Assembly: GCA_964057225.1 (NCBI GenBank)
Contig: OZ059897.1
Coordinates: 17,112,001 to 17,176,000, forward strand
Source of the DNA: Auanema rhodensis
Lineage: Eukaryota; Animalia; Nematoda
Length of the DNA stretch: 64,000 nt
Direction of reading: 5' to 3'
Under the pieces are notes generated by a model that had not been told where the DNA came from, ran no database searches, and was given only the letters and a program-made list of their open reading frames with translations. Within the stretch, counting starts at the first letter, position 1; every line of letters starts with the position of its first letter. The position numbers and the translations under genes were made by a program. Positions 12,029-64,000 of this stretch are shown here, piece by piece.

Positions 12029-12064
<36 letters not shown>

Positions 12065-25285: not shown

Positions 25286-25452
25286 GTTGAAGGTTTATGC
25301 TTGGGAGAACAGCCGCTAAAGTACCTATTTAAATCTATTTTTTTAATAATTAGATTTGTATAAGGTTTGGAGCTCAGAAAAAAATGGAACGGTTAGAACG
25401 TTTCTTCAATAGACTTAAGTCTAGGTGGTCTGGTACGATGACAAGGACCTGA
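22357..25452 (+). CDS. Tandem-SAM-domain protein, paralog B, with an additional FCS/TRASH-like zinc finger
   Basis: Same N-terminus and SAM domains as paralog A, plus spliced CLICSCKECLTRLAPQYCTEACR (24341-24451). Stop TGA 25450-25452. Confidence 0.78.
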
Positions 25453-37200: not shown

Positions 37201-39035
37201 AATTACAATATCAGCCTCTAGAACTTCTATCAGATTGTCTTGAGCACACAAAGCATCTGTTATTATGGTGGAAAATAAGATGAAAATAAAAATAAATAAA
37301 CCTTTCAGGCGATCTACATCATCAAGAATGCTATGCTTTTGATCTTCCATAAGCAATACGATAGACTCAGCATCAGTTAATTCTTGTATCAATGTATCTT
37401 CCAAATTCAAACTAGCTTGTAACTGGAAATGAATAAAAGGATTGAGAAAAAATTCAACAAGCTACTTTTTCGTTTAAGCTGCGATTACTTCTCGCACTTT
37501 CATCAAGTTCGTTTGTTATTCTTATTATTTTATTTCTATAAAAAAAAGTCAAGATATTAAAAAGACACTACGTAACCTGAGCTCGACAACTTCTTCTCGT
37601 AAATGGCCATTCTGTTTGACTTCCCAATCACGGGAATTTCGAAGCGTATCTATTTCATATTGCATACATTCGATCTATTCAAAAGTATTTAATTAGACAA
37701 CTTATGACAATCCCACTTTTTGTGAAAGGTTTGCGCTGATATCTGCCATTTTCTCCTCCAGCTCTCGAATTCGACTCTGAGTTACGGCTTTATTTTTTAA
37801 ATTAGCTTGTTTGGCATCTTTAAGCGCGGCTTCTTTTTCAGACAAAGTCTAAATATTGACGAAAGTGAATTATTTTAAACGTTCGACAAATTAATAACAA
37901 TGAAACTATTACTTCAATCAAATACACCTTCTCTCTGTTTGCGGTATCTCGAAGAATTTCTATTTCATTTCGAAAAGCATCATTTTCTTGCATAATATGC
38001 GACAAACGAAGCTGATATTCCTCTTCCAAAGCACTATGAAACTTTGAATTTGCTCAATTGACAAGATGTTAAAATCTACCTATCCCTATTACATGAAGAG
38101 GGGGGTAAATCGAAGGTTACTCTTTTTTTCTGCCTTTTCCGCAATGTTATCTCCTTATCCAAATTAGGGCCCTGAAACAGATAAGTAGAATGACGCTGGA
38201 TAGGGTTCATTATACAGAGAAGCAATTTCTGTTGGCAATATCATCTTCATCAACTTCACTGGGATCCAAAGGTGGGGGAGATCCTCCGGAATTGTCTGCA
38301 GAGTTGTATTAAACAATTATATTTAAGGAATATTACCTCTCACTACAGCATGTCCTGGGCTACGGTATATTGGCGCTAAAGTTTTACGAGAGTCAATTCC
38401 GTGGTACGATTCAGTCTCTGTACTCACTTCCTTGGTTTCCTTACATTCTATTTCCTGTAGCATATTGAACAACTGAGAAACAAATATGTATCAAGCTGAA
38501 CCTCAAATTTTTTTTGGACCAATCGCATAGCTTGACTTTTCACGTTCGCGACCTCTCCCTGTTCTCGGCATTGCTCCTAAAACCATTAATGTAAGAGGAA
38601 AGTCTTCAGTTGCACCTGTAGATCTAGGATATGCCTCTCTTTCTCAAGTATAACCGTATTCAGTTCAACTATTCGCTGATCCTGAAAATGTGTAGTTAAG
38701 AATTTCAGACTAAAAAAATAAACTTTATATTTCAACTGGCTTTGTAGATTTTCAAAATCAACTTCAGAAAGTTGGCTAGTTGTTGAAATCTGCTCTTCTA
38801 ACGCCTATAAAACGAAATTAAACAGGATATTTGATTGTAGCATACCTTCAATTTAATAATTTGCTCTTTCACAATAAGATTTTTCTTTTCTAGTTCTTCA
38901 ACAAGCATATCATTTTTTTTTAATGATTGTGTTAACAGATTTTCCAATTCTCCATTGCAACCCTAAGTGTGTATTTAATAGGAGTTGGGCTTTTCAACAA
39001 CATACTACTATATTGGAAGAGGCTGTAGATGACAT
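31291..39035 (-). CDS. Large uncharacterised coiled-coil protein (many short exons)
   Basis: Continuous E/K/L/Q-rich heptad-like exons on the minus strand (e.g. EELKRKLLQCENESSNTAAHISKLELQNELL, DNLIEVLEADIVIYEQHIGILRESL). ATG at 39035 lies downstream of TTACAG. Could be more than one gene; family not recognised. Confidence 0.65.
36578..36929 (+). CDS. Small BRI3 (brain protein I3)-like Cys-rich membrane protein, nested antisense in an intron
   Basis: CPGC-x-hydrophobic GLVAAIFCFPFGLYCCL-x-CEMC pattern. Exons 36578-36730, ~36770-36835 and 36891-36929 lie inside the ~660-nt intron 36359-37015 of the coiled-coil gene. Confidence 0.72.
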
Positions 39036-40683: not shown

Positions 40684-42977
40684 TCATAGGAAAACTTGAA
40701 TGAGTAGGAAGATCAGCATACAGGTAGCAATGTAAATGTTGATTTTAAGGCGAATTGTGGCGTTCTGTGGCTCCATGTAGTAGCTAAATCCTGTTTCTTC
40801 GTTTTGTATCAAATTATTGTCATTGCTTCCGATTCGTATCTGATCATCAGTATAGTTTGTTCCACTTAGTATCTTCCGTAAATTATTTCCTTTTGTGGAA
40901 GATTTTGATTTTGTGGACAATCGACAAGATCCTAAAAAATATAGCATAATTTAAATATAAAGCTTATTCTGTCACCATATTCTTGCAAAACTATTGTTTT
41001 TGAAGAATTGGAGTTAAAGTGTAGGTTCCGTGAACAATGTGCTCCCGTAGACGATAAATATAGCCGTCCATCGACTACTTTAGAAATCTATATGTCCGAA
41101 AATAAATAAATAATACTTTCAATTTACAAAGCATGACTGTATGTCCGGAGAGCGAGTTGTATAAGTAAAAATTGTTTGATTTTCTTTCCATGATCCTATA
41201 CAGTTGTAGAGGCGATCTAATAGTAGGTATATTCATACTTAATTGAACAAATATACTTACTGTCATAAATGGTTCCACTGTGACAGTCATAAGCGGAAAT
41301 TTTGAGAAGATTAGTACGACTACAATCGACTGTCACTTCATAGCAATCATCTGCTACGATGTCTGATGGAGTACGGTATTTCCCCGTTATTCCACAAGAT
41401 GATGGCACAGGGGTTTCTATTACAGCTGCAATCCAAGGTAGTTTGGAAAAACCACCTTCTGGTCTATAATATTATTTATTTCATTAGCTTGATTAATTCG
41501 TATTACTCGCAAAGTGATAAGTTAGTTTGTTCCGTGGGTACTGTTGAGGTAAACTCTAGCATAGAATTGCTTCTAGGTTTGAACCAAAAACAATGATATC
41601 CAACAGGTTCGCCACTAAACTCATTAATACTACAAGCTCCAGTAAAATTAATTGTAAAACCATTTAGTCTCTGAGTAAACGAGAATTCGATCGTTTTCGA
41701 TACTAAGACAATAAGAAAAAACGGGAACATTTCCGTTTTGATTGTATTCAAGTAAATTATCTGTTACAACAAGGTTACGGTAGTTACCCTGGAGCCATTC
41801 AGGAAATTTGCACTGTTGCACAGCGACACTACCACTTTCTACAAAGTAAAATTTTTTTAAATACATAGTTACTAAGAAATACTTGGAAGAAAAGTATATT
41901 GCTCAAAGTAATAAGATGAACGTAATTGAGTGCACGATGAATTTTTTGAAAAATTAACTGTCACTCCCATATCATTCTTCAGAATAATCTTAAAAAGAAA
42001 AAATGCTTAATTGTCAATTCTGAACATACTCCACAGCGCGTTTCATCGGTGTCCAAATTTTCAACCATTATGTAATGGTTTCCATTGCCGTCTCTCCATC
42101 TTCCTAAACATTCGAAAGATGTGCTGAAATCAGGAAAAGTACAGTTTACAAAATTAATGCTTATAATAGAAGAGGATTGACAGTTTTCTCCCTGGAAATA
42201 CATTGTTATTTTGTATACAAAAGGAAAAACTCAACAAAACTGCTATTCAAGCCTTCGCAAAATATTGTATTGTCATTATTTTTATATGTGATGAAAAAGT
42301 TGCTCTCCAAATCGCAATTTGCTGGTTTTCGGTGCTCGCCCCCTGAATTAACTATTGTAAGTCTGTTTTCAATAATTAAAAACTTAGTAATATAAATCCA
42401 TCTTCCATATTTACTTGGTGAATGGCAAAACAAGATTGCTTGGCTTCTTCTATTGAGTCAAAGCAATTATTTTCTAGAAATATTGAACGAGTATAAGATA
42501 CAATTGTGATCTTGGTGGTTTACCTTGCTGATGGGCAATTTGAACAATATTTAAAGATAATGATAATAATGTAATACATTTAAAGCAAATTTCCCTTCCC
42601 ATTCGACTATAATCAGAATTCATTAATGAGAAAAAAACTACGAATACCGTTGACCCATAATGTATGAACTAGCAAAGGTCTCATAACATTCACCAAACGT
42701 GGTGATGGAAGATGATGTTACAATAATCTGTACCATTTGATTACATATAAAAAACTTAATTAACTTTCACAACCTTATTGGTTGAAGAATTATAGCTGTC
42801 AACGGCGAGATTATCAGACACAAATACTCCGTGAAATGCACTATCAATGAAACACCGGGGTAGAGCGAATGCTGTACAGAAGTCAGATAAAAACGTATAA
42901 CAGAAAAAATTTATCAAACCTGAACATGAATATAATAAAACTAAACACCAGGAAATCATTGGTAAAAGTGAGAACAT
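40684..42977 (-). CDS. Cys-rich cell-surface protein with signal peptide and C-terminal hydrophobic anchor
   Basis: N-terminal MFSLLPMISWCLVLLYSC; repeated modules such as CKFPEWLQGNY, FECLGRW...ETRCG and SCGITGKY; ends INIYIATCMLIFLLIQVFL*. TTTTCCAG lies directly before the ATG. Confidence 0.75.
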
Positions 42978-43154
42978 CTGGAAAAATTGATTATATACGT
43001 GGTTTATGAGGAAGTAATATGTAGTATCTCTTCAGTTTCCACTTATGGTGAATCGCACACATGTATATATATATATATATAAAGTGAAGAGCAAACGTAT
43101 ATATCATGAAAATATTTGATTAATACTCAACATTATATATAAGTATAATATAAG

Positions 43155-43181
43155 TTTTGCTAAGGCTGAGCCAAAGCAAAA
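43155..43181. other. 27-bp degenerate palindrome, candidate Sequence For Elimination (programmed DNA break / telomere addition site)
   Basis: TTTTGCT-AA-GGCT-G-AGCC-AA-AGCAAAA: 11 of 13 symmetric pairs around 43168, with a GGC-N3-GCC core, between the last gene and the satellite. Confidence 0.55.
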
Positions 43182-43659
43182 AAAAATATGTTGTTCATAG
43201 ATATATAACCCTAGGAGTATAAAGTATAGGCTCAACTATATGCATTTATATTGTACTGTTTAGGTTTGACATTTTCTCTTGAGTTCCCATGAACACTCAA
43301 AATTGCTTCCCGAAACTTTTTGACAAAAATTTTCCCGAAAAATTTCAAAATAATTTCATGATGAGTATATGTTTTTAGATTAATTATTTCAAAGCAAAGA
43401 CGATGAACAATGTTATTTAACGAAAATATAAATCTTTAGGGTGAAAATCGAGGATATAAGTGTGAACCTATATCAGTTGATATCTCGGTGCATTTTTAAG
43501 CTAGCGCAAATCTGATAACACAGATCGACGCAGCTTAGAAATCCGCATCGAATGCACTATACTACATTGAGAAACGCTTAATACAAAAATTAGTTATGAT
43601 CGTTTGAAAAATGATGCATTAGTGCTCGAAAATAGGCATCAAATGTCATCATCAAAAAT

Positions 43660-46600
43660 GCATAAATTAAAGTTCACGTAAATTTCAAAGTCATGGTTAC
43701 CATGCACCAATATCAATAAAAATTTGTTTTTAGACTAAGATGGACATGGGGAATCTAATTTTGAAAACCGCATCTCTTTATCTTTCACGGGAAGCGAGTT
43801 ACATACCAAGGGCACATCACGTGTACATTTAATTAGCATAAATTGAAGTTCACGTAAATTTCAAAGTCATGGTTACCATGCATCAATATCAATAAAAATT
43901 TGTATTCAGACTAATATGGACATGGGGAATCTAATTTTGAAAACCGCATCTCTTTATCTTTCATGGGAAGCGAGATACATACCGAGTGCACATCGCGTGT
44001 ACATTTAATTAGCATAAATTGAAGTTCACGTAAATTTCAAAATCATGGTTACCATGCACTAATATCAATGAAAATTTGGTTTTAGACTAATATGGACATG
44101 GGGAATCTAATTTTGAAAACCGCATCTCTTCATCTTTCACGGGAAGCGAGTTACATACCAAGTACACATCACGTGTACATTTAATTAGCATAAATTAAAG
44201 TTCACGTAAATTTCAAAGTCATGGTTACCATGCACCAATATCAATAAAAAATTGTTTTTAGACTAATATGGACATGGGGAATCTAATTTTGAAAATCGCA
44301 TCTCTTTATCTTTCACGGGAAGCGAGTTTCATACAAGTGCACATCACGTGTACATTTAATTAGCATAAATTGAAGTTCACGTGAATTTCAAAGTCATGGT
44401 TACCATGCACCAATATGAATAAGAATTTGTTTTTAGACTAATGTGGACATGGGGAATCTAATTTTGAAAACCGCATCTCTTTATCTTTCACGGGAAGCGA
44501 GATACATACCGAGTGCACATCGCGTGTACATTTAATTAGCATAAATTAAAGTTCATGTAAATTTCAAAGTCATGGTTGCCATGCACCAATATCAATAAAA
44601 ATTTGGTTTTAGACTAATATGGATATGGGGAATCTAATTTTGAAAACCGCATCTCTTTATCTTTCACGGGAAGCGAGTTTCATACCAAGTGCACATCACG
44701 TGTACATTTAATTAGCATAAATTAAAGTTCACGTAAATTTCAAAGTCATGGTTACCATGCATCAATATCAATAAAAATTTGTTTTCAGACTAATATGGAC
44801 ATGGGGAATCTAATTTTGAAAACCGCATCTTTTCATCTTTCACGGGAAGCGAGTTACATACCAAGTACACATCACGTGTACATTTAATTAGCATAAATTA
44901 AAGTTCACGTAAATTTCAAAGTCATGGTTACCATGCACCAATATCAATAAAATATTGTTTTTAGACTAATATGGACTTGGGGAATCTAATTTTGAAAACC
45001 GCATCTTTTCATCTTTCACGGGAAGCGAGTTACATACCAAGTACACATCACGTGTACATTTAATTAGCATAAATTAAAGTTCACGTAAATTTCGAAGTCA
45101 TGGTTACCATGCACTAATATCAATGAAAATTTGGTTTTAGACTAATATGGATATGGGGAATCTAATTTTGAAAACCGCATCTTTTCATCTTTCACGGGAA
45201 GCGAGTTACATACCAAGTACACATCACGTGTACATTTAATTAGCATAAATTAAAGTTCACGTAAATTTCGAAGTCATGGTTACCATGCACTAATATCAAT
45301 GAAAATTTGGTTTTAGACTAATATGGATATGGGGAATCTAATTTTGAAAACCGCATCTTTTCATCTTTCACGGGAAGCGAGTTACATACCAAGTACACAT
45401 CACGTGTACATTTAATTAGCATAAATTAAAGTTCACGTAAATTTCAAAGTCATGGTTACCATGCACCAATATCAATGAAAATTTGTTTTTAGACTAATAT
45501 GGACATGGGGAATCTAATTTTAAAAACCGCATCTCTTTATCTTTCACGGGAAGCGAGTTTCATACAAGTGCACATCACGTGTACATTTAATTAGCATAAA
45601 TTGAAGTTCACGTAAATTTCAAAGTCATGGTTACCATGCACCAATATGAATAAGAATTTGTTTTTAGACTAATATGGACATGGGGAATCTAATTTTGAAA
45701 ACCGCATCTCTTTATCTTTCACGGGAAGCGAGTTACATACCGAGTGCACATCACGTGTACATTTAATTAGCATAAATTAAAGTTCACGTAAATTTCGAAG
45801 TCATGGTTACCATGCACCAATATCAATAAAAATTTCTTTTTAGACTAATATGGACTTGGGGAATCTAATTTTGAAAACCGCATCTCTTTATCTTTCACGG
45901 GGAGCGAGTTTCATACCAAGTGCACATCACGTGTACATTTAATTAGCATAAATTAAAGTTCACGTAAATTTCAAAGTCATGGTTACCATGCACCAATATC
46001 AATGAAAATTTGTTTTTAGACTAATATGAACATGGTGAATCTAATTTTGAAAACCGCATCTCTTTATCTTTCACGGGAAGCGAGTTACATACCAAGTACA
46101 CATCACGTGTACATTTAATTAGCATAAATGAAAGTTCACGTAAATTTGAAAGTCATGGTTACCATGCACCAATATCAATAAAAATTTGTATTCAGACTAA
46201 TATGGACATGGGGAATCTAATTTTGAAAACCGCATCTCTTTATCTTTCACGGGAAGCGAGTTTCATACAAGTGCACATCACGTGTACATTTAATTAGCAT
46301 AAATTGAAGTTCACGTAAATTTCAAAGTCATGGTTACCATGCACCAATATGAATAAGAATTTGTTTTTAGACTAATATGGACATGGGGAATCTAATTTTG
46401 AAAACCGCATCTCTTTATCTTTCACGGGAAGCGAGTTACATACCGAGTGCACATCACGTGTACATTTAATTAGCATAAATTAAAGTTCACGTAAATTTCA
46501 AAGTCATGGTTACCATGCATCAATATCAATAAAATATTGTTTTTAGACTAATATGGACTTGGGGAATCTAATTTTGAAAACCGCATCTCTTCATCTATCA

Positions 46601-49600
46601 CGGGAAGCGAGTTACATACCAAGTACACATCGCGTGTACATTTAATTAGCATAAATTGAAGTTCACGTGAATTTCAAAGTCATGGTTACCATGCACCAAT
46701 ATGAATAAGAATTTGTTTTTAGACTAATGTGGACATGGGGAATCTAATTTTGAAAACCGCATCTCTTTATCTTTCACGGGAAGCGAGTTACATACCAAGT
46801 GCACATCACGTGTACATTTAATTAGCATAAATTAAAGTTCACGTAAATTTCAAAGTCATGGTTGCCATGCACCAATATGAATAAGAATTTGTTTTTAGAC
46901 TAATATGGACATGGGGAATCTAATTTTGAAAACCGCATCTCCTTATCTTTCACGGGAAGCGAGTTACATACCGAGTGCACATCACGTGTACATTTAATTA
47001 GCATAAATTAAAGTTCACGTAAATTTCAAAGTCATGGTTACCATGCATCAATATCAATAAAATATTGTTTTTAGACTAATATGGACTTGGGGAATCTAAT
47101 TTTGAAAACCGCATCTCTTTATCTTTCACGGGAAGCGAGTTTCATACCAAGTGCACATCGCGTGTACATTTAATTAGCATAAATTGAAGTTCACGTAAAT
47201 TTCAAAGTCATGGTTACCATGCATCAATATCAATAAAATATTGTTTTTAGACTAATATGGACTTGGGGAATCTAATTTTGAAAACCGCATCTCTTTATCT
47301 TTCACGGGAAGCGAGTTACATACCGAGTGCACATCACGTGTACATTTAATTAGCATAAATTGAAGTTCACGTGAATTTCAAAGTCATGGTTACCATGCAC
47401 CAATATGAATAAGAATTTGTTTTTAGACTAATGTGGACATGGGGAATCTAATTTTGAAAACCGCATCTCTTTATCTTTCATGGGAAGCGAGATACATACC
47501 GAGTGCACATCGCGTGTACATTTAATTAGCATAAATTAAAGTTCACGTGAATTTCAAAGTCATGGTTGCCATGCACCAATATCAATAAAAATTTGGTTTT
47601 AGACTAATATGGATATGGGGAATCTAATTTTGAAAACCGCATCTCTTTATCTTTCACGGGAAGCGAGTTTCATACCAAGTGCACATCACGTGTACATTTA
47701 ATTAGCATAAATTAAAGTTCACGTAAATTTCAAAATCATGGTTACCATGCACCAATATCAATAAAAATTTGGTTTTAGACTAATATGGATATGGGGAATC
47801 TAATTTTGAAAACCGCATCTCTTTATCTTTCACGGGAAGCGAGTTTCATACCAAGTGCACATCACGTGTACATTTAATTAGCATAAATTAAAGTTCACGT
47901 AATTTTCAAAATCATGGTTACCATGCACCAATATCAATAAAAATTTGTTTTCAGACTAATATGGACATGGGGAATCTAATTTTGAAAACCGCATCTCTTC
48001 ATCTTTAAAGTGAAGCGAGTTACATACCAAGTACACATCACGTGTACATTTAATTAGCATAAATTGAAGTTCACGTGAATTTCAAAGTCATGGTTACCAT
48101 GCACCAATATGAATAAGAATTTGTTTTTAGACTAATGTGGACATGGGGAATCTAATTTTGAAAACCGCATCTCTTCATCTTTCACGGGAAGCGAGTTACA
48201 TACCAAGTACACATCACGTGTACATTTAATTAGCATAAATTGAAGTTCACGTGAATTTCAAAGTCATGGTTACCATGCACCAATATGAATAAGAATTTGT
48301 TTTTAGACTAATGTGGACATGGGGAATCTAATTTTGAAAACCGCATCTCTTCATCTTTCAAGGGAAGCGAGTTACATACCAAGTACACATCACGTGTACA
48401 TTTAATTAGCATAAATTGAAGTTCACGTGAATTTCAAAGTCATGGTTACCATGCACCAATATGAATAAGAATTTGTTTTTAGACTAATGTGGACTTGGGG
48501 AATCTAATTTTGAAAACCGCATCTCTTTATCTTTCACGGGAAGCGAGATACATACCAAGTGCACACCGCGTGTACATTTAATTAGCATAAATTAAAGTTC
48601 ACGTAAATTTAAAATCATGGTTACCATGCACTAATATCAATGAAAATTTGGTTTTAGACTAATATGGATATGGGGAATCTAATTTTGAAAACCGCATCTC
48701 TTTATCTTTCACGTGAAGCGAGTTACATACCAAGTGCACATCACGTGTACATTTAATTAGCATAAATTGAAGTTCACGTAAATATCAAAGTCATGGTTAC
48801 CATGCACCAATATCGATAAAAATTTGTTTTTAGACTAATATGGATATGGGGAATCTAATTTTGAAAACCGCATCTTTTGATCTTTCACGGGAAGCGAGTT
48901 ACATACCGAGTGCACATCGCGTGTACATTTAATTAGCATAAATTAAAGTTCACGTAAATTTCAAAGTCATGGTTACCATGCATCAATATCAATAAAATAT
49001 TGTTTTTAGACTAATATGGACTCGGGGAATCTAATTTTGAAAACCGCATCTCTTTATCTTTCACGGGAAGCGAGTTTCATACCAAGTGCACATCACGTGT
49101 ACATTTTATTAGCATAAATTGAAGTTCACGTAAATATCAAAGTCATGGTTACCATGCACCAATATCAATAAAAATTTGGTTTTAGACTAATATGGATATG
49201 GGGAATCTAATTTTGAAAACCGCATCTCTTTATCTTTCACGGGAAGCGAGTTTCATACCAAGTGCACATCACGTGTACATTTAATTAGCATAAATTAAAG
49301 TTCACGTAATTTTCAAAATCATGGTTACCATGCACCAATATCAATAAAAATTTGGTTTTAGACTAATATGGATATGGGGAATCTAATTTTGAAAACCGCA
49401 TCTCTTTATCTTTCACGGGAAGCGAGTTTCATACCAAGTGCACATCACGTGTACATTTAATTAGCATAAATTAAAGTTCACGTAATTTTCAAAATCATGG
49501 TTACCATGCACCAATATCAATAAAAATTTGTTTTCAGACTAATATGGACATGGGGAATCTAATTTTGAAAACCGCATCTCTTCATCTTTCACGGGAAGCG

Positions 49601-52600
49601 AGTTACATACCAAGTACACATCACGTGTACATTTAATTAGCATAAATTGAAGTTCACGTGAATTTCAAAGTCATGGTTACCATGCACCAATATGAATAAG
49701 AATTTGTTTTTAGACTAATGTGGACATGGGGAATCTAATTTTGAAAACCGCATCTCTTCATCTTTCACGGGAAGCGAGTTACATACCAAGTACACATCAC
49801 GTGTACATTTAATTAGCATAAATGAAAGTTCACGTAAATTTGAAAGTCATGGTTACCATGCACCAATATGAATAAGAATTTGTTTTTAGACTAATGTGGA
49901 CATGGGGAATCTAATTTTGAAAACCGCATCTCTTTATCTTTCACGGGAAGCGAGATACATACCAAGTGCACATCGCGTGTACATTTAATTAGCATAAATT
50001 AAAGTTCACGTAAATTTCAAAGTCATGGTTGCCATGCACCAATATGAATAAGAATTTGTTTTTAGACTAATATGGACATGGGGAATCTAATTTTGAAAAC
50101 CGCATCTCTTTATCTTTCACGGGAAGCGAGTTACATACCGAGTGCACATCACGTGTACATTTAATTAGCATAAATTAAAGTTCACGTAAATTTCAAAGTC
50201 ATGGTTACCATGCATCAATATCAATAAAATATTGTTTTTAGACTAATATGGACTTGGGGAATCTAATTTTGAAAACCGCATCTCTTTATCTTTCACGGGA
50301 AGCGAGTTTCATACCAAGTGCACATCGCGTGTACATTTAATTAGCATAAATTGAAGTTCACGTAAATTTCAAAGTCATGGTTACCATGCATCAATATCAA
50401 TAAAATATTGTTTTTAGACTAATATGGACTTGGGGAATCTAATTTTGAAAACCGCATCTCTTTATCTTTCACGGGAAGCGAGTTACATACCGAGTGCACA
50501 TCACGTGTACATTTAATTAGCATAAATTGAAGTTCACGTGAATTTCAAAGTCATGGTTACCATGCACCAATATGAATAAGAATTTGTTTTTAGACTAATG
50601 TGGACATGGGGAATCTAATTTTGAAAACCGCATCTCTTTATCTTTCACGGGAAGCGAGTTTCATACCAAGTGCACATCACGTGTACATTTAATTAGCATA
50701 AATTAAAGTTCACGTAAATTTCAAAATCATGGTTACCATGCACCAATATCAATAAAAATTTGGTTTTAGACTAATATGGATATGGGGAATCTAATTTTGA
50801 AAACCGCATCTCTTTATCTTTCACGGGAAGCGAGTTTCATACCAAGTGCACATCACGTGTACATTTAATTAGCATAAATTAAAGTTCACGTAAATTTCAA
50901 AATCATGGTTACCATGCACCAATATCAATAAAAATTTGGTTTTAGACTAATATGGATATGGGGAATCTAATTTTGAAAACCGCATCTCTTTATCTTTCAC
51001 GGGAAGCGAGTTTCATACCAAGTGCACATCACGTGTACATTTAATTAGCATAAATTAAAGTTCACGTAATTTTCAAAATCATGGTTACCATGCACCAATA
51101 TCAATAAAAATTTGTTTTCAGACTAATATGGACATGGGGAATCTAATTTTGAAAACCGCATCTCTTCATCTTTCACGGGAAGCGAGTTACATACCAAGTA
51201 CACATCACGTGTACATTTAATTAGCATAAATTGAAGTTCACGTGAATTTCAAAGTCATGGTTACCATGCACCAATATGAATAAGAATTTGTTTTTAGACT
51301 AATGTGGACATGGGGAATCTAATTTTGAAAACCGCATCTCTTCATCTTTCACGGGAAGCGAGTTACATACCAAGTACACATCACGTGTACATTTAATTAG
51401 CATAAATTGAAGTTCACGTGAATTTCAAAGTCATGGTTACCATGCACCAATATGAATAAGAATTTGTTTTTAGACTAATGTGGACATGGGGAATCTAATT
51501 TTGAAAACCGCATCTCTTCATCTTTCAAGGGAAGCGAGTTACATACCAAGTACACATCACGTGTACATTTAATTAGCATAAATTGAAGTTCACGTGAATT
51601 TCAAAGTCATGGTTACCATGCACCAATATGAATAAGAATTTGTTTTTAGACTAATGTGGACTTGGGGAATCTAATTTTGAAAACCGCATCTCTTTATCTT
51701 TCACGGGAAGCGAGATACATACCAAGTGCACACCGCGTGTACATTTAATTAGCATAAATTAAAGTTCACGTAAATTTAAAATCATGGTTACCATGCACTA
51801 ATATCAATGAAAATTTGGTTTTAGACTAATATGGATATGGGGAATCTAATTTTGAAAACCCCATCTCTTTATCTTTCACGTGAAGCGAGTTACATACCAA
51901 GTGCACATCACGTGTACATTTAATTAGCATAAATTGAAGTTCACGTAAATATCAAAGTCATGGTTACCATGCACCAATATCGATAAAAATTTGTTTTTAG
52001 ACTAATATGGATATGGGGAATCTAATTTTGAAAACCGCATCTTTTCATCTTTCACGGGAAGCGAGTTACATACCGAGTGCACATCGCGTGTACATTTAAT
52101 TAGCATAAATTAAAGTTCACGTAAATTTCAAAGTCATGGTTACCATGCATCAATATCAATAAAATATTGTTTTTAGACTAATATGGACTCGGGGAATCTA
52201 ATTTTGAAAACCGCATCTCTTTATCTTTCACGGGAAGCGAGTTTCATACCAAGTGCACATCACGTGTACATTTTATTAGCATAAATTGAAGTTCACGTAA
52301 ATATCAAAGTCATGGTTACCATGCACCAATATCAATAAAAATTTGGTTTTAGCCTAATATGGATATGGGGAATCTAATTTTGAAAACCGCATCTCTTTAT
52401 CTTTCACGGGAAGCGAGTTTCATACCAAGTGCACATCACGTGTACATTTAATTAGCATAAATTAAAGTTCACGTAATTTTCAAAATCATGGTTACCATGC
52501 ACCAATATCAATAAAAATTTGTTTTCAGACTAATATGGACATGGGGAATCTAATTTTGAAAACCGCATCTCTTCATCTTTCACGGGAAGCGAGTTACATA

Positions 52601-55600
52601 CCAAGTACACATCACGTGTACATTTAATTAGCATAAATTGAAGTTCACGTGAATTTCAAAGTCATGGTTACCATGCACCAATATGAATAAGAATTTGTTT
52701 TTAGACTAATGTGGACATGGGGAATCTAATTTTGAAAACCGCATCTCTTCATCTTTCACGGGAAGTGAGTTACATACCAAGTACACATCACGTGTACATT
52801 TAATTAGCATAAATTGAAGTTCACGTGAATTTCAAAGTCATGGTTACCATGCACCAATATGAATAAGAATTTGTTTTTAGACTAATGTGGACATGGGGAA
52901 TCTAATTTTGAAAACCGCATCTCTTCATCTTTCAAGGGAAGCGAGTTACATACCAAGTACACATCACGTGTACATTTAATTAGCATAAATTGAAGTTCAC
53001 GTGAATTTCAAAGTCATGGTTACCATGCACCAATATGAATAAGAATTTGTTTTTAGACTAATGTGGACATGGGGAATCTAATTTTGAAAACCGCATCTCT
53101 TCATCTTTCACGGGAAGCGAGTTACATACCAAGTACACATCACGTGTACATTTAATTAGCATAAATTGAAGTTCACGTGAATTTCAAAGTCATGGTTACC
53201 ATGCACCAATATGAATAAGAATTTGTTTTTAGACTAATGTGGATATGGGGAATCTAATTTTGAAAACCGCATCTCTTCATCTTTCAAGGGAAGCGAGTTA
53301 CATACCAAGTACACATCACGTGTACATTTAATTAGCATAAATTGAAGTTCACGTGAATTTCAAAGTCATGGTTACCATGCACCAATATCGATAAAAATTT
53401 GTTTTTAGACTAATATGGATATGGGGAATCTAATTTTGAAAACCGCATCTTTTCATCTTTCACGGGAAGCGAGATACATACCAAGTGCACACCGCGTGTA
53501 CATTTAATTAGCATAAATTAAAGTTCACGTAAATTTAAAATCATGGTTACCATGCACTAATATCAATGAAAATTTGGTTTTAGACTAATATGGATATGGG
53601 GAATCTAATTTTGAAAACCGCATCTCTTTATCTTTCACGTGAAGCGAGTTACATACCAAGTGCACATCACGTGTACATTTAATTAGCATAAATTGAAGTT
53701 CACGTAAATATCAAAGTCATGGTTACCATGCACCAATATCGATAAAAATTTGTTTTTAGACTAATATGGATATGGGGAATCTAATTTTGAAAACCGCATC
53801 TTTTCATCTTTCACGGGAAGCGAGTTACATACCGAGTGCACATCGCGTGTACATTTAATTAGCATAAATTAAAGTTCACGTAAAATTCAAAGTCATGGTT
53901 ACCATGCATCAATATCAATAAAATATTGTTTTTAGACTAATATGGACTCGGGGAATCTAATTTTGAAAACCGCATCTCTTTATCTTTCACGGGAAGCGAG
54001 TTTCATACCAAGTGCACATCACGTGTACATTTTATTAGCATAAATTGAAGTTCACGTAAATATCAAAGTCATGGTTACCATGCATCAATATCAATAAAAT
54101 ATTGTTTTTAGACTAATATGGATATGGGGAATCTAATTTTGAGAACCGCATCTTTTCATCTTTCACGGGAAGCGAGTTACATACCGAGTGCACATCGCGT
54201 GTACATTTAATTAGCATAAATTAAAGTTCACGTAAATTTCAAAGTCATGGTTACCATGCATCAATATCAATAAAATATTGTTTTTAGACTAATATGGACT
54301 CGGGGAATCTAAGTTTGAAAACCGCATCTCTTTATCTTTCACGGGAAGCGAGTTTCATACCAAGTGCACATCACGTGTACATTTTATTAGCATAAATTGA
54401 AGTTCACGTAAATATCAAAGTCATGGTTACCATGCATCAATATCAATAAAATATTGTTTTTAGACTAATATGGACTTGAGGAATCTAATTTTGAAAACCG
54501 CATCTTTTCATCTTTCACGGGAAGCGAGTTACATACCGAGTGCACATCGCGTGTACATTTAATTAGCATAAATTAAAGTTCACGTAAATTTCAAAGTCAT
54601 GGTTACCATGCATCAATATCAATAAAATATTGTTTTTAGACTAATATGGACTTGAGGAATCTAATTTTGAAAACCGCATCTTTTCATCTTTCACGGGAAG
54701 CGAGTTACATACCAAGTACACATCACGTGTACATTTAATTAGCATAAATTAAAGTTCACGTAAATTTCGAAGTCATGGTTACCATGCACTAATATCAATG
54801 AAAATTTGGTTTTAGACTAATATGGATATGGGGAATCTAATTTTGAAAACCGCATCTTTTCATCTTTCACGGGAAGCGAGTTACATACCAAGTACACATC
54901 ACGTGTACATTTAATTAGCATAAATTAAAGTTCACGTAAATTTCAAAGTCATGGTTACCATGCACCAATATCAATGAAAATTTGTTTTTAGACTAATATG
55001 GACATGGGGAATCTAATTTTAAAAACCGCATCTCTTTATCTTTCACGGGAAGCGAGTTTCATACAAGTGCACATCACGTGTACATTTAATTAGCATAAAT
55101 TGAAGTTCACGTAAATTTCAAAGTCATGGTTACCATGCACCAATATGAATAAGAATTTGTTTTTAGACTAATATGGACATGGGGAATCTAATTTTGAAAA
55201 CCGCATCTCTTTATCTTTCACGGGAAGCGAGTTACATACCGAGTGCACATCACGTGTACATTTAATTAGCATAAATTAAAGTTCACGTAAATTTCAAAGT
55301 CATGGTTACCATGCACCAATATCAATAAAAATTTGTCTTCAGACTAATATAGACATGGGGAATCTAATTTTGAAAACCGCATCTCTTTATCTTTCACGGG
55401 AAGCGAGTTTCATACCAAGTGCACATCACGTGTACATTTAATTAGCATAAATTAAAGTTCACGTAAATTTCGAAGTCATGGTTACCATGCACCAATATCA
55501 ATAAAAATTTCTTTTTAGACTAATATGGACTTGGGGAATCTAATTTTGAAAACCGCATCTCTTTATCTTTCACGGGAAGCGAGTTTCATACCAAGTGCAC

Positions 55601-58600
55601 ATCACGTGTACATTTAATTAGCATAAATTAAAGTTCACGTAAATTTCGAAGTCATGGTTACCATGCACCAATATCAATAAAAATTTGTTATTAGACTAAT
55701 ATGAACATGGTGAATCTAATTTTGAAAACCGCATCTCTTTATCTTTCACGGGGAGCGAGTTTCATACCAAGTGCACATCACGTGTACATTTAATTAGCAT
55801 AAATTAAAGTTCACGTAAATTTCAAAGTCATGGTTACCATGCACCAATATCAATGAAAATTTGTTTTTAGACTAATATGAACATGGTGAATCTAATTTTG
55901 AAAACCGTATCTCTTTATCTTTCACGGGAAGCGAGTTACATACCAAGTACACAACACGTGTACATTTAATTAGCATAAATGAAAGTTCACGTAAATTTGA
56001 AAGTCATGGTTACCATGCACCAATATCAATAAAAATTTGTATTCAGACTAATATGGACATGGGGAATCTAATTTTCAAAACCGCATCTCTTTATCTTTCA
56101 CGGGAAGCGAGTTTCATACAAGTGCACATCACGTGTACATTTAATTAGCATAAATTGAAGTTCACGTAAATTTCAAAGTCATGGTTACCATGCACCAATA
56201 TGAATAAGAATTTGTTTTTAGACTAATATGGACATGGGGAATCTAATTTTGAAAACCGCATCTCTTCATCTTTCACGGGAAGCGAGTTACATACCGAGTG
56301 CACATCACGTGTACATTTAATTAGCATAAATTAAAGTTCACGTAAATTTCAAAGTCATGGTTACCATGCATCAATATCAATAAAAATTTGTTTTCAGACT
56401 AATATGGACATGGGGAATCTAATTTTGAAAACCGCATCTCTTTATCTTTCACGGGAAGCGAGTTACATACCGAGTGCACATCACGTGTACATTTAATTAG
56501 CATAAATTAAAGTTCACGTAAATTTCAAAGTCATGGTTACCATGCATCAATATCAATGAAAATTTGTTTTTAGACTAATATGGACTTGGGGAATCTAATT
56601 TTGAAAACCGCCTCTCTTTATCTTTCACGGGAAGCGAGTTTCATACCAAGTGCACATCACGTGTACATTTAATTAGCATAAATTAAAGTTCACGTAAATT
56701 TCAAAATCATGGTTACCATGCATCAATATCAATAAAAATTTGTTTTCAGACTAATATGGACATGGGGAATCTAATTCTGAAAACCGCATCTCTTCATCTT
56801 TCACGGGAAGCGAGTTACATACCAAGTACACATCGCGTGTACATTTAATTAGCATAAATTGAAGTTCACGTGAATTTCAAAGTCATGGTTACCATGCACC
56901 AATATGAATAAGAATTTGTTTTTAGACTAATGTGGGCATGGGGAATCTAATTTTGAAAACCGCATCTCTTTATCTTTCACGGGAAGCGAGATACATACCA
57001 AGTGCACATCGCGTGTACATTTAATTAGCATAAATTGAAGTTCACGTAAATTTCAAAGTCATGGTTGCCATGCACCAATATGAATAAGAATTTGTTTTTA
57101 GACTAATATGGACATGGGGAATCTAATTTTGAAAACCGCATCTCTTTATCTTTCACGGGAAGCGAGTTACATACCGAGTGCACATCACGTGTACATTTAA
57201 TTAGCATAAATTAAAGTTCACGTAAATTTCAAAGTCATGGTTACCATGCATCAATATCAATAAAATATTGTTTTTAGACTAATATGGACTTGGGGAATCT
57301 AATTTTGGAAACCGCATCTCTTCATCTTTCACGGGAAGCGAGTTACATACCAAGTACACATCGCGTGTACATTTAATTAGCATAAATTGAAGTTCACGTG
57401 AATTTCAAAGTCATGGTTACCATGCACCAATATGAATAAGAATTTGTTTTTAGACTAATGTGGACATGGGGAATCTAATTTTGAAAACCGCATCTCTTTA
57501 TCTTTCACGGGAAGCGAGATACATACCAAGTGCACATCGCGTGTACATTTAATTAGCATAAATTAAAGTTCACGTAAATTTCAAAGTCATGGTTACCATG
57601 CACCAATACGAATAAGAATTTGTTTTTAGACTAATGTGGACATGGGGAATCTAATTTTGAAAACGGCATCTCTTTATCTTTCACGGGAAGCGAGATACAT
57701 ACCAAGTGCACATCGCGTGTACATTTAATTAGCATAAATTAAAGTTCACGTAAATTTCAAAGTCATGGTTACCATGCACCAATACGAATAAGAATTTGTT
57801 TTTAGACTAATGTGGACATGGGGAATCTAATTTTGAAAACCGCATCTCTTTATCTTTCACGGGAAGCGAGTTACATACCGAGTGCACATCACGTGTACAT
57901 TTAATTAGCATAAATTAAAGTTCACGTAAATTTCAAAGTCATGGTTACCATGCATCAATATCAATAAAATATTGTTTTTAGACTAATATGGACTTGGGGA
58001 ATCTAATTTTGAAAACCGCATCTCTTTATCTTTCACGGGAAGCGAGTTTCATACCAAGTGCACATCGCGTGTACATTTAATTAGCATAAATTGAAGTTCA
58101 CGTGAATTTCAAAGTCATGGTTACCATGCACCAATATGAATAAGAATTTGTTTTTAGACTAATGTGGACATGGGGAATCTAATTTTGAAAACCGCATCTC
58201 TTTATCTTTCATGGGAAGCGAGATACATACCGAGTGCACATCGCGTGTACATTTAATTAGCATAAATTGAAGTTCACGTGAATTTCAAAGTCATGGTTAC
58301 CATGCACCAATATGAATAAGAATTTGTTTTTAGACTAATGTGGACATGGGGAATCTAATTTTGAAAACCGCATCTCTTTATCTTTCACGGGAAGCGAGAT
58401 ACATACCAAGTGCACACCGCGTGTACATTTAATTAGCATAAATTAAAGTTCACGTAAATTTCAAAGTCATGGTTGCCATGCACCAATATCAATAAAAATT
58501 TGGTTTTAGACTAATATGGATATGGGGAATCTAATTTTGAAAACCGCATCTCTTTATCTTTCACGGGAAGCGAGTTTCATACCAAGTGCACATCACGTGT

Positions 58601-61600
58601 ACATTTAATTAGCATAAATTAAAGTTCACGTAAATTTCAAAGTCATGGTTACCATGCACCAATATCAATAAAATATTGTTTTTAGACTAATATGGACTTG
58701 GGGAATCTAATTTTGAAAACCGCATCTCTTTATCTTTCACGGGAAGCGAGTTTCATACCAAGTGCACATCACATGTACATTTAATTAGCATAAATTAAAG
58801 TTCACGTAAATTTCGAAGTCATGGTTACCATGCACTAATATCAATGAAAATTTGGTTTTAGACTAATATGGATATGGGGAATCTAATTTTGAAAACCGCA
58901 TCTCTTTATCTTTCACGTGAAGCGAGTTACATACCAAGTGCACATCACGTGTACATTTAATTAGCATAAATTGAAGTTCACGTAAATATCAAAGTCATGG
59001 TTACCATGCACCAATATCAATAAAAATTTGTTTTTAGACTAATATGGACATGGGGAATCTAATTTTGAAAACCGCATCTTTTCATCTTTCACGGGAAGCG
59101 AGTTACATACCGAGTGCACATCGCGTGTACATTTAATTAGCATAAATTAAAGTTCACGTAAATTTCAAAGTCATGGTTACCATGCATCAATATCAATAAA
59201 ATATTGTTTTTAGACTAATATGGACTTGGGGAATCTAATTTTGAAAACCGCATCTTTTCATCTTTCACGGGAAGCGAGTTACATACCAAGTACACATCAC
59301 GTGTACATTTAATTAGCATAAATTAAAGTTCACGTAAATTTCGAAGTCATGGTTGCCATGCACCAATATGAATAAGAATTTGTTTTTAGACTAATATGGA
59401 CATGGGGAATCTAATTTTGAAAACCGCATCTCTTTATCTTTCACGGGAAGCGAGATACATACCAAGTGCACATCGCGTGTACATTTAATTAGCATAAATT
59501 AAAGTTCACGTAAATTTCAAAGTCATGGTTGCCATGCACCAATATGAATAAGAATTTGTTTTTAGACTAATATGGACATGGGGAATCTAATTTTCAAAAC
59601 CGCATCTCTTTATCTTTCACGGGAAGCGAGTTTCATACAAGTGCACATCACGTGTACATTTAATTAGCATAAATTGAAGTTCACGTAAATTTCAAAGTCA
59701 TGGTTACCATGCACCAATATGAATAAGAATTTGTTTTTAGACTAATATGGACATGGGGAATCTAATTTTGAAAACCGCATCTCTTCATCTTTCACGGGAA
59801 GCGAGTTACATACCGAGTGCACATCACGTGTACATTTAATTAGCATAAATTAAAGTTCACGTAAATTTCAAAGTCATGGTTACCATGCATCAATATCAAT
59901 AAAAATTTGTTTTCAGACTAATATGGACATGGGGAATCTAATTTTGAAAACCGCATCTCTTCATCTTTCACGGGAAGCGAGTTACATACCAAGTACACAT
60001 CGCGTGTACATTTAATTAGCATAAATTGAAGTTCACGTGAATTTCGAAGTCATGGTTACCATGCACCAATATCAATAAAAATTTCTTTTTAGACTAATAT
60101 GGACTTGGGGAATCTAATTTTGAAAACCGCATCTCTTTATCTTTCACGGGAAGCGAGTTTCATACCAAATGCACATCACGTGTACATTTAATTAGCATAA
60201 ATCAAAGTTCACGTAAATTTCGAAGTCATGGTTACCATGCACCAATATCAATAAAAATTTGTTTTTAGACTAATATGAACATGGTGAATCTAATTTTGAA
60301 AACCGCATCTCTTTATCCTTCACGGGGAGCGAGTTTCATACCAAGTGCACATCACGTGTACATTTAATTAGCATAAATTGAAGTTCACGTAAATTTAAAA
60401 TCATGGTTACCATGCACCAATATCAATAAAAATTTGTTTTTAGACTAATATGGACTTGGGGAATCTAATTTTGAAAACCGCATCTCTTTATCTTTCACGG
60501 GAAGCGAGTTTCATACCAAGTGCACATCACATGTACATTTAATTAGCATAAATTAAAGTTCACGTAAATTTCGAAGTCATGGTTACCATGCACTAATATC
60601 AATGAAAATTTGGTTTTAGACTAATATGGATATGGGGAATCTAATTTTGAAAACCGCATCTCTTTATCTTTCACGTGAAGCGAGTTACATACCAAGTGCA
60701 CATCACGTGTACATTTAATTAGCATAAATTGAAGTTCACGTAAATATCAAAGTCATGGTTACCATGCACCAATATCAATAAAAATTTGTTTTTAGACTAA
60801 TATGGACATGGGGAATCTAATTTTGAAAACCGCATCTTTTCATCTTTCACGGGAAGCGAGTTACATACCGAGTGCACATCGCGTGTACATTTAATTAGCA
60901 TAAATTAAAGTTCACGTAAATTTCAAAGTCATGGTTACCATGCATCAATATCAATAAAATATTGTTTTTAGACTAATATGGACTTGGGGAATCTAATTTT
61001 GAAAACCGCATCTTTTCATCTTTCACGGGAAGCGAGTTACATACCAAGTACACATCACGTGTACATTTAATTAGCATAAATTAAAGTTCACGTAAATTTC
61101 GAAGTCATGGTTGCCATGCACCAATATGAATAAGAATTTGTTTTTAGACTAATATGGACATGGGGAATCTAATTTTGAAAACCGCATCTCTTTATCTTTC
61201 ACGGGAAGCGAGATACATACCAAGTGCACATCGCGTGTACATTTAATTAGCATAAATTAAAGTTCACGTAAATTTCAAAGTCATGGTTGCCATGCACCAA
61301 TATGAATAAGAATTTGTTTTTAGACTAATATGGACATGGGGAATCTAATTTTCAAAACCGCATCTCTTTATCTTTCACGGGAAGCGAGTTTCATACAAGT
61401 GCACATCACGTGTACATTTAATTAGCATAAATTGAAGTTCACGTAAATTTCAAAGTCATGGTTACCATGCACCAATATGAATAAGAATTTGTTTTTAGAC
61501 TAATATGGACATGGGGAATCTAATTTTGAAAACCGCATCTCTTCATCTTTCACGGGAAGCGAGTTACATACCGAGTGCACATCACGTGTACATTTAATTA

Positions 61601-64000
61601 GCATAAATTAAAGTTCACGTAAATTTCAAAGTCATGGTTACCATGCATCAATATCAATAAAAATTTGTTTTCAGACTAATATGGACATGGGGAATCTAAT
61701 TTTGAAAACCGCATCTCTTCATCTTTCACGGGAAGCGAGTTACATACCAAGTACACATCGCGTGTACATTTAATTAGCATAAATTGAAGTTCACGTGAAT
61801 TTCGAAGTCATGGTTACCATGCACCAATATCAATAAAAATTTCTTTTTAGACTAATATGGACTTGGGGAATCTAATTTTGAAAACCGCATCTCTTTATCT
61901 TTCACGGGAAGCGAGTTTCATACCAAGTGCACATCACGTGTACATTTAATTAGCATAAATTAAAGTTCACGTAAATTTCGAAGTCATGGTTACCATGCAC
62001 CAATATCAATAAAAATTTGTTTTTAGACTAATATGAACATGGTGAATCTAATTTTGAAAACCGCATCTCTTTATCCTTCACGGGGAGCGAGTTTCATACC
62101 AAGTGCACATCACGTGTACATTTAATTAGCATAAATTAAAGTTCACGTAAATTTCAAAGTCATGGTTACCATGCACCAATATCAATGAAAATTTGTTTTT
62201 AGACTAATATGAACATGGTGAATCTAATTTTGAAAACCGTATCTCTTTATCTTTCACGGGAAGCGAGTTACATACCAAGTACACATCACGTGTACATTTA
62301 ATTAGCATAAATGAAAGTTCACGTAAATTTGAAAGTCATGGTTACCATGCACCAATATCAATAAAAATTTGTATTCAGACTAATATGGACATGGGGAATC
62401 TAATTTTCAAAACCGCATCTCTTTATCTTTCACGGGAAGCGAGTTTCATACAAGTGCACATCACGTGTACATTTAATTAGCATAAATTGAAGTTCACGTA
62501 AATTTCAAAGTCATGGTTACCATGCACCAATATGAATAAGAATTTGTTTTTAGACTAATATGGACATGGGGAATCTAATTTTGAAAACCGCATCTTTTCA
62601 TCTTTCACGGGAAGCGAGTTACATACCGAGTGCACATCACGTGTACATTTAATTAGCATAAATTAAAGTTCACGTAAATTTCAAAGTCATGGTTACCATG
62701 CATCAATATCAATAAAAATTTGTTTTCAGACTAATATGGACATGGGGAATCTAATTTTGAAAACCGCATCTCTTTATCTTTCACGGGAAGCGAGTTACAT
62801 ACCGAGTGCACATCACGTGTACATTTAATTAGCATAAATTAAAGTTCACGTAAATTTCAAAGTCATGGTTACCATGCATCAATATCAATGAAAATTTGTT
62901 TTTAGACTAATATGGACTTGGGGAATCTAATTTTGAAAACCGCCTCTCTTTATCTTTCACGGGAAGCGAGTTTCATACCAAGTGCACATCACGTGTACAT
63001 TTAATTAGCATAAATTAAAGTTCACGTAAATTTCAAAATCATGGTTACCATGCATCAATATCAATAAAAATTTGTTTTCAGACTAATATGGACATGGGGA
63101 ATCTAATTTTGAAAACCGCATCTCTTCATCTTTCACGGGAAGCGAGTTACATACCAAGTACACATCGCGTGTACATTTAATTAGCATAAATTGAAGTTCA
63201 CGTGAATTTCAAAGTCATGGTTACCATGCACCAATATGAATAAGAATTTGTTTTTAGACTAATGTGGGCATGGGGAATCTAATTTTGAAAACCGCATCTC
63301 TTTATCTTTCACGGGAAGCGAGATACATACCAAGTGCACATCGCGTGTACATTTAATTAGCATAAATTGAAGTTCACGTAAATTTCAAAGTCATGGTTGC
63401 CATGCACCAATATGAATAAGAATTTGTTTTTAGACTAATATGGACATGGGGAATCTAATTTTGAAAACCGCATCTCTTTATCTTTCACGGGAAGCGAGTT
63501 ACATACCGAGTGCACATCACGTGTACATTTAATTAGCATAAATTAAAGTTCACGTAAATTTCGAAGTCATGGTTACCATGCATCAATATCAATAAAATAT
63601 TGTTTTTAGACTAATATGGACTTGGGGAATCTAATTTTGAAAACCGCATCTCTTCATCTTTCACGGGAAGCGAGTTACATACCAAGTACACATCGCGTGT
63701 ACATTTAATTAGCATAAATTGAAGTTCACGTGAATTTCAAAGTCATGGTTACCATGCACCAATATGAATAAGAATTTGTTTTTAGACTAATGTGGACATG
63801 GGGAATCTAATTTTGAAAACCGCATCTCTTTATCTTTCACGGGAAGCGAGATACATACCAAGTGCACATCGCGTGTACATTTAATTAGCATAAATTAAAG
63901 TTCACGTAAATTTCAAAGTCATGGTTACCATGCACCAATACGAATAAGAATTTGTTTTTAGACTAATGTGGACATGGGGAATCTAATTTTGAAAACGGCA
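43660..64000 (+). repeat. 176-bp tandem satellite DNA array, ~115 monomers, running off the window end
   Basis: CATAAATT recurs at 43661, 43837 and 44013 (period 176, with occasional 175-bp variants). Monomers differ at a limited set of recurring positions; no ORFs of 60 aa or more in the track. Confidence 0.99.

Follow-up and report, generated by a model that had tools for sequence, protein, structure and literature searches.

A palindromic SFE as the probable DNA elimination break site between a gene-rich arm and the AT-1 satellite block of Auanema rhodensis

The system closest to the locus described here is the one reported for A. rhodense, whose germline assembly comprises 180.9 Mb, of which ~61% is lost from the soma (10.64898/2026.08.27.747507, August 2026). 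Most of the eliminated DNA lies in tandem-repeat blocks, multi-megabase in size and built of 167-504-nt units, which occupy the two ends and the centre of every autosome (10.64898/2026.08.27.747507). The chromosomes are cut precisely at 28 internal sites, 24 of them autosomal (four on each autosome), where gene-rich DNA gives way to repeat-rich DNA, with a fall in read depth from ~236x to ~29x; 28/28 of these breaks are overlapped by a palindromic SFE of 29 bases, and the telomere is added between its positions 14 and 15 (10.64898/2026.08.27.747507). The repeat found at all autosome ends is targeted by the FISH probe AT-1_Cy3, named "A-elim", which gives a signal in every nucleus up to the 8-cell stage; from the 12-cell stage the signal is lost in somatic cells, and it stays in the two primordial germ cells (10.64898/2026.08.27.747507).

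A second well-described system is that of Oscheius tipulae. In this species the SFE is degenerate and palindromic, spans 29 bp and carries GGC (positions 11-13) and GCC (positions 17-19) on either side of a 3-bp spacer; >98% of telomere additions take place at the GGC/GCC (PMC13060919; 10.1101/2022.08.19.504554). CRISPR experiments demonstrated that the consensus SFE is necessary for the breaks and is sufficient for them when inserted elsewhere. The published consensus pairs at 11/14 positions, and functional sites tolerate up to 8 mismatches (PMC13060919; 10.1101/2022.08.19.504554). Priming by GGC, resection of the ends, the requirement for the SFE and healing on both sides of the break have been established by experiment in O. 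tipulae only (PMC13060919; 10.1101/2022.08.19.504554).

The palindrome and its rarity

The window, that is, the whole stretch of 64,000 nucleotides that was analysed, has a G+C content of ~32-34% throughout. The sequence TTTTGCTAAGGCTGAGCCAAAGCAAAA was read at 43155-43181, where the arms TTTTGCTAAGGCT and AGCCAAAGCAAAA surround a lone central G (43168). The arms pair at 11/13 positions, both mismatches being AA/AA (43162-63 versus 43173-74), and the core is formed by GGC (43164-66), TGA (43167-69) and GCC (43170-72). When 43154 is taken as position 1 of the published numbering, GGC falls at 11-13, GCC at 17-19 and the 14/15 junction between 43167 and 43168. In this longer form, 43154-43182, 11/14 arm positions pair, which makes the stretch a palindrome in the sense used for the rhabditine SFE, and the other attributes of that element are present as well: the GGC-N3-GCC centre, the AT-rich flanks and the location at a boundary between retained and germline-restricted DNA. 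The GC fraction is 0.41 in the motif, 0.15 in the 60 bp on its left and 0.28 in the 60 bp on its right. The features of the site are the following, X2 and X6 being two public sequencing runs that are described in the next section.

43154..43182, no strand assigned: SFE, 29 bp, a degenerate palindrome with two 14-nt arms and the central G at 43168, in the published numbering
43164..43166, plus strand: GGC of the retained side, SFE positions 11-13, putative primer for TTAGGC addition
43170..43172, minus strand: GCC of the eliminated side, SFE positions 17-19, which reads GGC on the minus strand and may prime transient healing
43167..43168, no strand assigned: probable break and neo-telomere junction, SFE positions 14/15; the fit of the X2 and X6 contigs ends at 43167

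Motifs of this kind turned out to be scarce. GGC-N3-GCC has a single occurrence in the whole 64-kb window, at 43164-43172, and palindromes of the form 13+1+13 with at least 11 pairs are found twice in the 64 kb (n=2), the second one, at 25331, being A/T-rich and devoid of a GGC/GCC core. To estimate the chance expectation, the 43 kb outside the satellite were simulated 2000 times with a first-order Markov model. The core together with at least 11/14 palindromic pairs appeared 0.002 times per simulated 43-kb sequence, and the core by itself 0.96 times. As single-stranded DNA, the stretch 43155-43181 folds at -7.6 kcal/mol (z = -2.66). A second SFE-like site was sought in the window at an identity of at least 19/29 to the 29-mer 43154-43182 and none was found, and the same was true of near-core variants (GGC-N2/N4-GCC close to the site and half-core patterns). 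Telomere repeats, sought in the window as TTAGGCTTAGGC with at most 1 mismatch, gave 0 matches, an expected and uninformative outcome because the window comes from a germline assembly. The Rfam search of the window returned 0 families above threshold.

An earlier note on this DNA, made from its letters and their open reading frames, had described a near-perfect palindrome with a GGC-TGA-GCC core, and this description was confirmed at 43155-43181 with 11/13 pairs. The same note had called the architecture SFE-like, in agreement with the published arrangement (a degenerate palindrome of 29 bp, in which GGC at 11-13 is separated by 3 bp from GCC at 17-19, between flanks rich in A and T). Its two distances also proved accurate: the motif, placed ~180 bp past the ATG of the last gene, begins 178 bp from it (ATG 42977, minus strand), and the satellite, placed ~480 bp beyond the motif, starts 479 bp away, at 43660.

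The likeness to the A. rhodense SFE (Gonzalez de la Rosa et al., bioRxiv 2026) extends from the 29-base palindrome with two 14-base arms and AT-rich flanks to the central base between two four-letter blocks, here GGCT and AGCC, and to the position at a transition from gene-rich to tandem-repeat DNA; no difference was found in these features. Sites described on A. rhodense chromosomes 1, 2 and 3 are accompanied by a second high-scoring motif, whereas the window lacks one within 1.1 kb downstream. With the O. tipulae SFE (Dockendorff et al. 2022), the locus shares the length of 29 bp, the GGC/GCC spacing and the T-rich outer positions, and also the match of GGC/GCC to the telomere repeat TTAGGC, whose synthesis they prime there. 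The two differ in the outer half-site: positions 1-4 read TTTA in O. tipulae but GTTT in 43154-43182, and positions 4-7 read AGGT in the former but TTGC in the latter. They also differ in genomic setting, since O. tipulae cuts at chromosome ends only and loses 0.6% of its genome, whereas the present site adjoins a satellite block of several megabases and the species concerned discards ~61%.

Among rhabditine nematodes, the SFEs of C. auriculariae, C. monodelphis as well as C. parvicauda (PMC13370393) and the bipartite motif of Mesorhabditis belari have in common with this locus the precise, motif-associated addition of telomeres, and the DNA eliminated in these Caenorhabditis species (PMC13370393) and in M. 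belari also includes satellites. In contrast, their motifs are non-palindromic, do not span the addition site but lie upstream of it, and show no similarity in sequence to the O. tipulae type. In Ascaris, too, breaks are healed by de novo TTAGGC telomeres and satellite-rich germline DNA is lost in early embryos. However, the Ascaris breaks are scattered over several kilobases and are motif-less, whereas the position indicated here is one base inside a motif.

Contigs that end at the palindrome

The unique DNA to the left of the satellite is present in 15 public runs, which belong to DNA studies of 2019, 2023 and 2024 and to an RNA study of 2019. All runs were used in the form of Logan contigs, and the contigs of four runs were placed on 41700-43899. 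In run X2 (2023), a contig of 1590 nt with a depth of 285.6 fits 41700-43167 with its letters 103-1570, and its final 20 letters do not fit. Towards the left, this contig reaches at least 41700, or ~41598 as judged from its length, and it is unbroken at 286x. In run X6 (2019), which comes from a different study, the fit of a contig of 114 nt with a depth of 291.7 also ends at 43167 and is also followed by 20 unfitting letters. The depth in the bin 43180-43253 is 0 in both X2 and X6, compared with 285.6 (X2) and 105-244 (X6) leftward; Logan contigs prove presence and not absence, and summed contig depth is not to be read as copy number. Taken alone, the zero depth on the right side in X2 and X6 is weak evidence. 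In contrast to these two runs, X1 (2024) holds a contig of 2354 nt, with a depth of 16.9, that bridges the site across 41700-43255. This bridging contig represents the germline state, in which the site is uncut. The assembly may have been built from the X1 sample, and for this reason X1 is not an independent source.

Two (TA)n microsatellites were noticed in the window, at 43064-43083 and 12029-12081. The one at 43064-43083, ~85 bp ahead of the break site, splits the Logan contigs of X6.

The base at which the two contigs cease to fit is the one that telomere addition to the retained GGC predicts. In the neo-telomere model GGC+TTAGGC, the fit to the window ends exactly at 43167. The model fits through this base, with a retained end of the form ...GCTAAGGC + TTAGGC, because the first telomeric T coincides with a T of the window, and AGGC(T) at 43163-43167 matches the telomere register over 4 letters before any addition. 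The mirror model for the eliminated side, which starts from GCC on the minus strand, reaches down to 43169. No contig with a healed end of the eliminated side was seen among the contigs placed on 41700-43899, which are presence-only data. We infer that the 20 unfitted letters past 43167 are telomere repeat. The simplest k=31 argument would give 25 loose letters versus the 20 that were observed. The shorter overhang may come from 31-mers that are shared from 43158 on, as would occur if other break sites also carry TGCTAAGGC + telomere.

Genes and repeats on either side

The DNA around the palindrome can be divided into a retained gene on the left and three successive stretches of germline-type DNA on the right.

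40684..42977, minus strand: last retained gene, several exons, exon 1 with its ATG at 42977, 3' limit approximate
43183..43253, no strand assigned: unique germline-limited stretch, covered solely by the X1 contig
43254..43659, no strand assigned: one isolated fragment of a different very high-copy repeat, non-AT-1, between break site and satellite
43660..64000, plus strand: AT-1 satellite with a 176-bp unit, 115.6 copies and 94% matches (tandem repeat finder), which runs off the window

The last retained gene contains the domains DUF7042, DUF7043 and DUF7045 (Pfam E-values 1.3e-12, 7.9e-10 and 6.9e-12, respectively), and its exon 1 opens with a signal-peptide-like sequence; the product is predicted to be a secreted-type protein. 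The gene is transcribed, since the RNA runs X11-X14 hold a fraction of ~0.4 of the words sampled from 40700-43650. Its ATG at 42977 lies 190 bp from the future somatic chromosome end. Further to the left, a BRI3-like gene (Brain protein I3, PF10164) of two exons was recognised at 36578-36929 on the plus strand, with a product of ~63 aa, a donor GAG|GTAAGA at 36730/36731 and an acceptor TTTCAG ending at 36890. A multi-exon gene at 33200-38030 on the minus strand encodes a coiled-coil-type protein, visible as many ORF fragments in which E, K and L abound in a heptad-like sequence, and it gave no Pfam family above threshold. Homologues of the DUF7042 exon and of exon 1 of the BRI3-like gene were sought in a collection of 5.8 billion proteins, and the searches returned no candidates; three ORFs situated on the X2 contig likewise had no recorded contig match. 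The proteins and contig ORFs of this species thus seem to be absent from that collection. The BRI3-like protein had no relative in the same 5.8-billion-protein collection at that length range.

On the right, unique DNA beyond the site amounts to ~85 bp only. From 43254, the summed contig depth jumps by three to five orders of magnitude, to 3e4-2.5e7. Within the repeat fragment that starts at this position, recurrent loose ends are found at two places, 43357/43358 and 43624, and the contigs of all four runs continue from there into identical foreign sequence. Because these loose ends show other copies that continue differently, 43254-43659 is a part, rearranged, of a different repeat family, which is possibly the AT-2 of 10.64898/2026.08.27.747507.

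The identity of the large array was established with the published FISH probe. The 28-nt AT-1_Cy3 ("A-elim") matches the array 107 times at no more than 2 mismatches, 7 times exactly, with one match per 176-bp unit on the plus strand, where 0 matches are expected by chance. By this match, the window belongs to the germline genome of A. rhodense, or to one that the repeat does not tell apart from it, and 43660-64000 is read as germline-restricted, autosome-terminal repeat DNA. The probe site occurs in variants (ACATACCGAG..., TCATACCAAG..., ...GTACACATC...) that recur in ordered runs along the array, and some units measure 175 bp, not 176 bp. The gapless autocorrelation of the array displays secondary peaks near 1231-1407 and 7036 bp, which are blurred by 1-bp indels. 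This organisation suggests that the array may hold multi-unit higher-order duplications.

Several predictions of the earlier note are borne out by these data. It had read the window as germline DNA, a view with which the bridging contig of X1, as the uncut form, and the presence of AT-1, as an eliminated repeat, both agree. It had assigned the genes on the left to the retained DNA, where contigs of retained-type depth and an RNA-supported gene are indeed found up to the site, and the satellite on the right to the eliminated DNA, where the array matches the AT-1 probe whose target is lost from the soma in the published FISH. Of its layout, the satellite start at 43660 held; the high-copy repeat DNA, however, already begins at ~43254 according to the depth table. 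It had also predicted ends of the form ...GCTAAGGC followed by telomere, and the contigs of two runs cease to fit at 43167. A loss of depth to the right of the site was expected as well, and 0 contig depth was obtained at 43180-43253 in X2 and X6, in data that prove presence and not absence.

Explanations and biological meaning

The window is very probably a germline border between a gene-rich arm that is kept in the soma and an AT-1 block that is discarded, with 43154-43182 as the SFE of this border. It is almost certain that the palindrome belongs to the break sites already reported for A. rhodense. The feature is an instance of the already described A. rhodense SFE and does not represent a new kind of element.

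The course of events at this border would be as follows. In presomatic blastomeres, once the embryo has about 12 cells, a sequence-specific factor would recognise the palindrome; from the symmetry of the site we infer that this factor is a dimer. A double-strand break would then be made at the centre of the palindrome, either by the factor itself or by a nuclease that it recruits. After resection of the ends, the 3' end ...TAAGGC(T) would pair with the telomerase template and prime the addition of (TTAGGC)n. The DNA on the left, with its genes, would thus acquire a new somatic chromosome end 190 bp past the ATG of the last gene, and the DNA on the right (85 bp of unique sequence, the repeat fragment and AT-1) would be lost in micronucleus-like bodies and degraded. 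The timing, the loss of AT-1 and the addition of telomeres at 14/15 in A. rhodense are taken from 10.64898/2026.08.27.747507.

Other explanations of the same observations have to be weighed. The X2 and X6 contigs could diverge at 43167 through a non-telomeric junction between strains, caused by structural polymorphism or by an assembly difference. Satellite blocks rearrange readily at their edges, the identity of the loose letters has been deduced from the model, and the overhang of 20 letters departs from the 25 of the simplest k-mer argument. However, a junction of this type would have to coincide with the exact centre of a palindrome that is expected 0.002 times by chance and with the single base predicted by GGC+TTAGGC, and it would have to do so identically in runs from two studies separated by four years, in a species for which breaks at such motifs are documented (10.64898/2026.08.27.747507). 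A strain junction is for these reasons very improbable. It is very unlikely that the palindrome arose by chance, or that it is an ordinary promoter element of the last gene to which a protein binds, and that it plays no part in elimination, with the true break elsewhere nearby. Imperfect palindromes are plentiful in AT-rich intergenic DNA, as the other 11/13 palindrome at 25331 illustrates, and O. tipulae has high-scoring SFE-like sites that remain uncut (PMC13060919; 10.1101/2022.08.19.504554). However, the palindrome at 25331 is without the GGC/GCC core, the sole GGC-N3-GCC in 64 kb lies here, and the X2 contig continues unbroken at 286x until 43167, which places the end of the retained DNA at this motif and at no other point.

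The motif might also be an alternative, fail-safe SFE within eliminated DNA, and not the one that sets the end of the somatic chromosome. Extra SFEs are present in the eliminated DNA of O. tipulae as well as of A. rhodense, some of them no more than 1.1 kb from the main site. At this locus, however, retained-type depth and expressed genes extend on the left right up to the site, and the window has no other SFE-like motif on either the left or the right of it, so that a fail-safe role is extremely unlikely. The preferred reading is therefore that of a main break site at which the somatic chromosome ends.

This reading has a possible consequence for the gene at the border. In the germline, the upstream region of this gene would extend into megabases of H3K9me3-type satellite, whereas in the soma it would consist of ~190 bp and a telomere, and elimination could thereby switch its expression. 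This switch is a rather unlikely proposal. If it were true, it would represent a regulatory use of programmed DNA elimination that is independent of gene deletion and acts on a retained gene at the border.

Similar GGC-N3-GCC palindromes at gene/satellite borders of this genome are to be regarded as known biology. For the present site, two public runs give support at the level of the single base, and the window is tied to the named repeat AT-1; a reading made from sequence only had located a true break site. If several break sites share TGCTAAGGC, the A. rhodense motif would be much less degenerate than that of O. tipulae, and it would be a good bait for the binding factor. In this nematode, a short DNA motif directs the cutting of the chromosomes in the embryo, their healing by telomeres and the discard of ~61% of the germline genome.
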